A stretch of DNA of 63,574 nucleotides, the filler included, from Octopus bimaculoides (taxonomy: Eukaryota), in the NCBI RefSeq assembly GCF_001194135.2. It is 5 parts of 5 records of this genome, joined end to end, with 100 filler letters (N's around TTAATTAATTAA, not from the genome) between each part and the next. Parts side by side here need not be neighbours in the genome. Positions count along the whole stretch, not along the records: positions 46,263 to 59,925 come from NC_069006.1; 4 more parts are not named here. One strand, written 5' to 3'. Below, piece by piece: positions 50,950 to 52,015 of this stretch. How positions within the stretch are numbered: the stretch's first letter is position 1; the number at the start of each line of letters is the position of its first letter. The translations under genes and the position numbers were made by a program. The notes beneath the pieces are model-generated. The model was not told the origin of the DNA and searched no databases. It saw only the letters and a program-made list of their open reading frames with translations.

Positions 50950-52015
50950 CTAAGATTGACAAAATCCTTCCTTTGAATAAACTTCTAATCCTACCTGTTT
51001 TCTCGTATCAGCTTTTCGAATAAAATCATTAAACATTTCTTTACTTTCGGTGAAAGCATTAACAAATTTTTTGCAAAAATCCGCTCTGAGTACTCCAATC
51101 ACTGTTTGGGATTCTGTTAAGGCAATCATATTCACAGAGTGGGGTTCCTGCACAGGCTTGGAATCTTGAAGATCCTTCATATTCACAGATTGGGATTCCT
51201 GTACAGGTTGGGTTTCTTGAAGATGGTCCATATTCACAGATGGCGATTCTTGCACATGCTGGGTTTCTTGAAGACCGACCATATTCACAGATGGCGATTC
51301 TTGCACAGGCTGGGTTTCTTGAAGACCGACCATATTCACAGATGGCGATTCTTGCACAGGCNNNNNNNNNNNNNNNNNNNNNNNNNNNNNNNNNNNNNNN
51401 NNNNNNNNNNNNNNNNNNNNNNNNNNNNNNNNNNNNNNNNNNNNNNNNNNNNNNNNNNNNNNNNNNNNNNNNNNNNNNNNNNNNNNNNNNNNNNNNNNNN
51501 NNNNNNNNNNNNNNNNNNNNNNNNNNNNNNNNNNNNNNNNNNNNNNNNNNNNNNNNNNNNNNNNNNNNNNNNNNNNNNNNNNNNNNNNNNNNNNNNNNNN
51601 NNNNNNNNNNNNNNNNNNNNNNNNNNNNNNNNNNNNNNNNNNNNNNNNNNNATATTTCGTATTGCTCGTTACCTTCCAGAATAAACATCTTCCGTTCGTT
51701 TATTTTTTTTGACATTGGTGGTTTTTCTTGTACAACTTTACTTCCCATTTGTTTTTCGAATAATATCTTTAACGATTCGTTGTGTGTTATGGAAAGAATG
51801 TCCACGAACTTTTCCGGAGGACAACTTCTTTTTTGTAAAATCATCAACATTTCTCGAATTTTGTCTCTTTCTGTAGTTTGTGATTTTATAGTTTCATAAT
51901 TGCTAGTTGTGATATGGTCACGAGAGCTTAAATAATCCAGAACATCATCGAATTGAGAGAGATTCTGGACAATTTCTGGCAGAAGTTTCACATAAATACT
52001 CATTGTGGTAAACAT
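50950..52015 (-). CDS. CARD-like death-fold protein with 17-aa tandem repeats (middle hidden in a 290-N gap)
   Basis: The N-terminus (LLPEIVQNL..FDDVLDYL.SRDHIT.SNYETIKSQTTERDKIREMLMILQKR...FVDIL) fits the CARD helix pattern. After the gap an open frame encodes five (PVQESPSVNMVGLQETQ)-type units and a short C-terminus ending at TAG 50950-50952, with ATTAAA about 55 nt downstream. Frame continuity across the gap cannot be checked. Confidence 0.72.
51107..51361 (-). repeat. 51-bp coding tandem repeat, at least 5 units
   Basis: cacagatggcgattcttgcaca(t/g)gctgggtttcttgaagaccgaccatatt repeats and runs into the gap. Confidence 0.9.

Follow-up and report, generated by a model that had tools for sequence, protein, structure and literature searches.

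We analyzed a 63,574-nucleotide stretch of Octopus bimaculoides DNA (five parts joined end to end with filler; hereafter the window) and characterized a gene for a caspase recruitment domain (CARD) protein on its minus strand, at positions 52015 to 50950, in the part derived from NC_069006.1. We consider it probable that this gene, which is unannotated and broken by an assembly gap, encodes a fast-evolving member of an octopod-specific family of CARD adaptors and carries a coding minisatellite in a disordered loop. A first-pass annotation, made from the sequence alone, had read the locus as a CARD followed directly by a tandem array of ATM/ATR-type phosphorylation sites, and hence as a candidate DNA-damage-to-death signaling protein. 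That layout does not hold, as the intact orthologue from Octopus sinensis has about 260 residues of alpha/beta module sequence between the two parts that flank the gap.

A CARD gene interrupted by an assembly gap

The N-terminal half of the predicted protein matched the Pfam CARD family (PF00619) at residues 14–63 with 32.3 bits (gathering cut-off 23.9; E 1e-7). A phmmer search of PDB sequences returned the CARD of CED-3 (E 7e-4), followed by those of ASC and RIPK2. A single-sequence AlphaFold2 (AF2) model of this half contained six helices, with a predicted local distance difference test score (pLDDT) of 63, and its Foldseek matches, weak in E-value, were almost only CARDs, including all of the top ones. 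In the AF2 model of a 61%-identical relative, P0002, the CARD reached a pLDDT of 81–90 and matched CARD8 (TMt 0.81), CED-3 (0.73–0.74) and RIP2 (0.71), and also NOD1, with a probability of ~1.0 and E-values of only 0.03–0.1. Thus, the N-terminus is a CARD, a six-helix bundle of the death-fold type, in agreement with the first-pass annotation. The Pfam match spans profile positions 10–59, compared with 6–82 at 38–40 bits in the relatives. Neither the two halves in the window, nor the three downstream minus-strand frames, nor five full-length relatives gave a Pfam match at E ≤ 1 to Peptidase_C14, NACHT/NB-ARC, protein kinase or death domains.

The true architecture emerged from O. sinensis. A locus of CM016884.1 (L001) in that species runs collinear with the window, beginning ~3.5 kb upstream of the gene and ending ~3 kb downstream of it. 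The orthologue (gene A) is an annotated gene with one uninterrupted open reading frame (ORF) of 479 codons at L001:3558-4997, in which Pfam recognizes the CARD only. Its product consists of the CARD, module A and module B, with three units of the 17-residue repeat lying in the loop of module B. The two sequences flanking the gap in the window align to codons 4–117 and 385–482 of this single ORF (counted from a TTG at L001:3549, three codons before the ATG). Therefore, judged by the orthologue, both halves belong to one frame of one gene, as the first-pass annotation required. The edges of the gap map to L001:3900 and L001:4711-4712, ~811 bp apart and inside the ORF, and the intervening ~260 residues complete module A and cover most of module B. 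Since modules lie between the flanks in the orthologue, the direct junction between CARD and repeat is an artefact of the gap. Judged by this alignment, the 17-residue repeat is an insertion in a module loop rather than a stand-alone domain after the CARD. The gap itself is expected, on the same comparison, to conceal ~260 codons (~810 bp) of module sequence together with further 51-bp units. We found the same 290-N gap in the assembly record (GCA_001194135.2, CM046626.1), which agreed with the window without a mismatch in 12,218 nt.

The window gene and gene A thus share their chromosomal neighbourhood, the 17-residue repeat and its position in the loop. They differ in the number of units (at least five versus three), in a new unit type that ends in LQETQ instead of LRDSR, and in the CARD, with an amino acid identity of 56–61%. 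The gene has the following features:

52016..52717, minus strand: upstream non-coding region (putative promoter/5′ UTR), conserved with O. sinensis
51746..52015, minus strand: start codon(s) and CARD; M1 at 52015 and a second Met, M5, at 52003; CARD at about residues 4–90, six helices
51652..51745, minus strand: linker KQMGSKVVQEKPPMSKKIN and first beta-strand of the first alpha/beta module, ERKMFILEGNEQYEI, truncated by the gap (family alignment)
51362..51651, no strand: assembly gap of 290 N, a placeholder length (flank mapping to O. sinensis L001)
51106..51361, minus strand: coding minisatellite, five visible units of 51 bp/17 residues (tandem repeat search, register and translation)
51360-51310, 51309-51259, 51258-51208, 51207-51157 and 51156-51106, minus strand: repeat units 1 to 5 (translation)
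50953..51105, minus strand: last strand and two C-terminal helices of the last alpha/beta module, TVIGVLRADFCKKFVNAFTESKEMFNDFIRKADTRKQVGLEVYSKEGFCQS (aligned to the C-termini of relatives)
50950..50952, minus strand: stop codon, true protein end (homologue ends)

On the 5′ side, an in-frame stop codon precedes the ATG. The ORF starts at 52015 and stays open for 121 codons to the gap edge at 51652, the two remaining frames of this half being riddled with stops; its M5 aligns with the ATG of the O. sinensis orthologue. The upstream region (52016..52717) has its collinear counterpart in L001:2837-3557, with 87.3% identity over 694 nt. Next to the gap, 51652..51745 aligns with the segment 'VVQEKP..KRKVFILxG' of P0001–P0003 and gene A. 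If the 290 N are taken at face value, the frame of the C-terminal half is shifted by +1 relative to that of the N-terminal half (655 mod 3 = 1). This offset is uninformative, because the number of N is a placeholder and the orthologue has ~811 bp there with both flanks in one frame.

The C-terminal half is open for 136 codons and ends, after the repeat, in a 51-residue non-repetitive tail and a stop. This tail (50953..51105) aligns with the C-termini of P0001, P0003 and gene A (…SKEMFNVFIRKADTRKQLGLQVY*), and the stop falls 5 residues past the end of gene A and 2 past those of P0001 and P0003. No Pfam domain was found in any of the three minus-strand frames of 46263-51000, from the gene downstream to the edge of the piece. 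A candidate 5′ splice donor at ~50992 ('RKQ|GTAGGA'), which would lead to later exons, was excluded by the ends of the three homologues and by this lack of a downstream Pfam domain. A second open frame across the repeat (ACARIAICEYGRSSRNP) stops at 51059, and the orthologous ORF uses the frame originally read; a HIRAN match on the C-terminal half was weak (E 0.028; 14.7 bits against a cut-off of 24.7). We rejected both.

As a separate observation, the orthologue product on record has 462 amino acids against the 479 codons of the ORF, a difference of exactly one 17-residue unit. This may reflect a copy number that differs between the assembly and the transcript evidence, or an annotated 'intron' placed within the repeat.

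The octopod family and its module

Word-indexed homologue searches with each half gave no match. By contrast, a full HMMER scan with the N-terminal half retrieved P0001, P0002 and P0003 at E-values of 1e-33 to 1e-32 and an Argonauta protein, P0005, at 8e-12. The relatives come from O. vulgaris, O. bimaculoides, O. sinensis and Argonauta hians and are all annotated as 'uncharacterized' or 'hypothetical'; paralogues include LOC118768009 (O. sinensis), the LOC118768007-like CAI9741432.1 (O. vulgaris), LOC106872585 (O. bimaculoides) and GAB1602176.1 (Argonauta hians). Their identity to the window gene over the CARD, the linker and the start of the module (residues 5–120) is 44–61%. The relatives found by the scan consist of a CARD, a 'VVQEKP…' linker and one to three modules of ~170 residues. 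Each module starts with 'KRKxFIxxG', has the cores 'FDIIVxCD' and 'SIITFLIIVD' and ends in 'F..F..S.EMFN.FI.K', and the last one is followed by 'RKADTRK' and the end of the protein, a C-terminal signature that the window gene shares. The window gene, gene A and the paralogues are thus alike in the CARD, the linker 'VVQEKP…KRKxFIxxG', the C-terminal helix 'SKEMFNxFIRKADTRK' and the protein end. They part at the loop, which is single-copy in the other paralogues (KTESQPEINNDTEA) and occupied by the repeat in the window gene and in gene A.

Nothing in Pfam, NCBIfam, PADLOC or the PDB sequences matched the module itself significantly, a PDB profile search included; each search returned nothing or noise, and the apparent Pfam hits with 0 stretches in a 12-module protein described below are noise summed by repetition. 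An AF2 model of P0002 (9-row alignment; module pLDDT ~70) showed the order beta-alpha-beta-alpha-beta-alpha-beta, a loop at residues 202–224 (pLDDT < 50) and beta-alpha-alpha. This medium-confidence model suggests a flavodoxin-like three-layer sandwich. Foldseek searches of PDB with the module returned generic flavodoxins, CpaE/CheY-like receivers, SIS domains and caspase-3 (TMt 0.49), all at E > 0.006. A module-profile search returned P0002 only, which does not suffice to show that octopods alone possess the module. We found no description of an octopus family with CARD and module in the literature searched.

Two further paralogues lie near the orthologue in O. sinensis, at L001:9992-16524 and L001:25032-26894, so the family forms a tandem gene cluster. 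The nearer one, 5 kb downstream of the orthologue, comprises a CARD and at least 12 nearly identical modules of ~174 residues (a 522-bp tandem array). It is split into two ORFs of 1139 and 1038 residues, which overlap by 4 nt in different frames, indicating a frameshift or an assembly error. The other is an ORF of 620 residues from a GTG at 25032, or 608 from an ATG, with a CARD and three modules. Taken together, the family, known from four species, is probably restricted to octopods and tandemly duplicated, its members having a CARD and from one to at least twelve modules.

Divergence from the orthologue was unevenly distributed along the window gene. For the CARD, the ratio of non-synonymous to synonymous substitution rates (dN/dS) was 2.15 (dN 0.247, dS 0.115); this excess over 1 was not significant (Fisher p = 0.07), and we do not claim positive selection. 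The ratio was 1.7 for the whole N-terminal half, 1.47 for the repeat, 0.43 for the C-terminal helices and ~1.25 for all alignable codons. In nucleotide terms, the CARD-coding DNA (51652-52003) is 81.8% identical, compared with 87–92% in the non-coding flanks (52016-52717 and 49258-50949). These rates, along with the 56–61% amino acid identity of the window CARD to orthologue and paralogues alike, are compatible with relaxed constraint, with diversifying selection or with gene conversion between the tandem paralogues, and do not discriminate among the three.

The 17-residue repeat and its S/T-Q sites

The repeat was detected by Tandem Repeats Finder at 51127-51361 as a 51-bp tandem repeat (4.6 copies, 88% matches, score 328) that abuts the N run. 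Units 1 and 2 both read PVQESPSVNMVGLQETQ and are 100% identical in DNA; units 3 to 5 read HVQESPSVNMDHLQETQ, PVQESQSVNMKDLQDSK and PVQEPHSVNMIALTESQ. The consensus is PVQESPSVNMxxLQETQ, with VQE..SVNM..L as its invariant positions. The units had been described exactly: 1 to 3 end in LQETQ, unit 4 in LQDSK with an internal ESQ, and unit 5 in LTESQ. The O. sinensis array at L001:4712-4865 has three units, PVQESPSVNTDDLRDSR, PVQESQSENMDDLRDSR and PVQESQSENMNDLPESQ (Os1 to Os3). In DNA, unit 5 is 88% identical to Os3 and unit 4 is 88% identical to Os2, with units 1–3 at 80–82% to Os1, a pattern suggesting that units 1–3 arose by lineage-specific amplification of an Os1-type unit. The repeat maps to the low-confidence loop of the module (P0002 residues 202–224, pLDDT < 50), and the model indicates that it is probably disordered.

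The repeat region contains five Ser/Thr-Gln (S/T-Q) dipeptides in 85 residues, at repeat residues 16, 33, 50, 56 and 84, and the O. sinensis protein has them at residues 410, 427 and 438. Three sites fall within 35 residues in the window and within 29 in O. sinensis, so that both species satisfy the usual definition of an SQ/TQ cluster domain (SCD; at least three S/T-Q in 100 residues) and a stricter one (at least three in 50). To this extent, the earlier assignment of an SCD was formally correct. The count, however, is not above chance: composition-preserving shuffles of the 85 residues contained at least three sites in 47% and at least five in 6.5% of cases, the shuffled consensus unit contained S/T-Q 49% of the time, and the 51 residues of O. 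sinensis reached at least three sites in 8%. The definitions are unspecific: in yeast, over 25% of the proteome qualifies under the loose one, and of 436 hits to the strict one, 147 would be expected by chance alone (PMC3564818).

Conservation of the sites, on which the first-pass annotation depended, proved to be partial. Two S/T-Q sites in the three alignable units are common to both species, the ESQ of unit 4 and the terminal ESQ, in comparison with one orthologue. By contrast, the window ETQ corresponds to DSR in O. sinensis, an O. sinensis SQ corresponds to PH in the window, and units 1 and 2 have no counterpart. LQETQ is limited to the unit type amplified in O. bimaculoides and reads LRDSR in O. 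sinensis. Since units 1–3 are copies of one type and LQETQ occurs only there, the five sites go back to about three independent origins, two of them conserved, and three of the sites are one substitution copied by unit amplification. The S/T-Q dipeptides thus probably follow from the copying of a Q/S/E/T-rich unit several times, and the cluster is weak evidence for targeting by ATM or ATR.

The repeat also carries DxxD-type motifs followed by Ser, namely DLQD-S in unit 4 (51157-51207) and DLRD-S twice in O. sinensis (L001:4713-4814), which are missing from the amplified LQETQ units. Situated in a flexible loop of a CARD protein, such motifs could be candidate caspase cleavage sites.

Alternative explanations and comparison with known systems

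We propose that a 17-residue minisatellite expanded within the final module, in the poorly ordered loop that separates its fourth strand from its last strand and helices, and that the newest O. bimaculoides units, identical in DNA, may have caused the assembly break. The CARD would recruit CARD-bearing partners, plausibly CED-3-type caspases, by homotypic death-fold interaction, and the protein would have an adaptor or regulatory role in apoptosis or innate immunity, with the alpha/beta modules as its sensing, oligomerizing or effector part and the loop repeat as a variable flexible spacer. Several points weigh against this proposal. The window CARD is 56–61% identical in amino acids to all paralogues and to the positional orthologue alike, and gene conversion or very fast change may blur its orthology; dN/dS at or above 1 would also be expected of a decaying copy. 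The module fold depends on a model with pLDDT ~70 and has no Foldseek match at E < 1e-3. No gene is called at the locus in the assembly record, which we attribute to the gap. The number of modules, the number of units and even the continuity of the ORF in O. bimaculoides are extrapolated from another species, and partner and pathway are drawn purely from CARD biology.

If the O. bimaculoides copy were a decaying, non-functional family member with a neutral minisatellite, dN/dS of ~1.25 over all alignable codons, the missing gene call, a CARD match confined to profile positions 10–59 (6–82 in the relatives) and the frameshift that splits the neighbouring gene B of O. sinensis would all be readily understood. 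We nevertheless regard a pseudogene as unlikely, given that the correct frame is open on either side of the gap, over 121 and 136 codons, with the alternative frames of the N-terminal half full of stops; that the C-terminal helices are constrained (dN/dS 0.43); and that the orthologous ORF is intact over 479 codons and annotated, the gap accounting for the missing call. A functional SCD that is phosphorylated by ATM or ATR and couples DNA damage to caspase activation appears to us very unlikely. It would draw on the five sites in 85 residues that satisfy the stricter definition in both species, the probable disorder of the region (the equivalent loop has pLDDT < 50), an acidic residue before every S/T-Q and a terminal ESQ kept in both species and in the paralogue gene C. 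However, the number of sites is within the expectation from composition, three of the five are copies of one unit type, and definitions of SCDs have high false-positive rates (PMC3564818). Moreover, the counterpart of LQETQ is LRDSR in the orthologue and LQDSK in unit 4, the ESQ of Os3 is lost from its counterpart in unit 5, and the invariant positions of the unit are VQE..SVNM..L and not T-Q. The repeat is, besides, a loop insertion in a globular module, with no nuclear or DNA-damage-response context.

Least probable of all, in our view, is that the repeat is a protease-sensitive linker, placed as the intersubunit linker is in caspases within a possibly caspase-like module, with cleavage by a recruited caspase regulating the protein. 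DLQD-S in unit 4 and DLRD-S in O. sinensis units 1–2, the caspase-3 chains among the Foldseek matches of the module (7xn5_C; probability 0.95, TMt 0.49) and the closeness of the CARD to CED-3-type CARDs speak for such a linker. The motif is missing, however, from the amplified LQETQ units and from unit 5, the caspase matches are no better than those to flavodoxin or CheY-like proteins (all E > 0.006), there is no Peptidase_C14 match at E ≤ 1, and the module has no invariant His and an invariant Cys that is off the caspase position. A more far-reaching idea, which we hold to be improbable, is that the family represents an undescribed class of death-fold scaffold, in which a non-NACHT, flavodoxin- or caspase-like module, in up to at least 12 copies, would serve as sensor or oligomerizer, the CARD would be under diversifying selection and the minisatellite would be a switch sensitive to phosphorylation (including by S/T-Q kinases) or to proteases. 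We retain the CARD adaptor with a minisatellite in a module loop as the probable explanation.

A CARD joined to an ATM-site array is accordingly not real, and the locus offers no direct handle on DNA-damage-to-death signaling. It still provides a modest lead for research on comparative immunology and cell death, namely a lineage-specific, tandem and fast-evolving cephalopod CARD family with a domain unmatched in Pfam, NCBIfam and PDB, whose modules are amplified to an extreme degree within single proteins and whose coding minisatellite varies in length. Molluscs are already well known for lineage-specific expansions of death-fold proteins, and the octopus CARD family is thus an incremental example. 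The locus also illustrates that a gap beside a tandem repeat can produce a false domain architecture.

Other elements accompany the CARD gene in the same part of the window. An annotated O. bimaculoides gene for a 230-residue protein lies at 57708-58400 (minus strand), sharing the strand of the CARD gene and 5.7 kb upstream of it; its product has several Cys pairs (CARCH…, CRLCG…), belongs to no Pfam family and gives only sub-threshold zinc-finger matches. A block at 55065-55544 (minus strand), ~3 kb upstream of the CARD gene, is conserved (82%) with L001:1-462 and serves as a synteny anchor; it has an open frame ('MILLLCRKYFPVFST…') and TG microsatellites, and is probably non-coding or repeat-derived. 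Interspersed repeat copies that resemble short interspersed elements and are followed by TG/TA microsatellites occupy 46709-47083, 58641-58986 and 59233-59417 and match several O. sinensis sites at 81–90% (e.g. L001:17370-17776, 18641-18825 and 36434-36560). A second assembly gap (200 N) is located at 59033-59232, and the chromosome record has a gap of 5,088 N just past the edge of the piece.

Compared with known systems, the repeat resembles the SCDs of the checkpoint proteins Rad53/Chk2, Rad9, BRCA1 and others (Traven & Heierhorst 2005, as cited in PMC9776478) in having at least three S/T-Q within 50–100 residues of a probably disordered Q/S-rich stretch. Unlike these, the octopus sites stem from a recent tandem repeat, are only partly conserved and do not exceed the number expected from composition. 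The stretch that holds them forms a loop in a globular module, and the CARD protein to which this module belongs has no link to the DNA-damage response. The first-pass annotation had further invoked a logic like that of the PIDDosome (PIDD1–RAIDD–caspase-2). The likeness extends to the general idea alone, a death-fold adaptor upstream of a CARD caspase: the octopus protein has no death domain, ZU5/UPA or leucine-rich repeats, we found no homology, and nothing we found ties it to DNA damage, which leaves the proposal an unsupported speculation. On PIDD1, the target of ATM is a defined site in the death domain and not a repeat array. There is a further parallel with CARD adaptors and prodomains (CED-3/caspase-2/-9, RIPK2, ASC, CARD8, NOD1 and Apaf-1), with which the protein shares the Pfam CARD and the six-helix bundle and among which it has its best sequence and fold matches. 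The octopus protein differs in what comes after its CARD: not a caspase, kinase, NACHT/NB-ARC, PYD or death domain, but an unclassified alpha/beta module, often in tandem.

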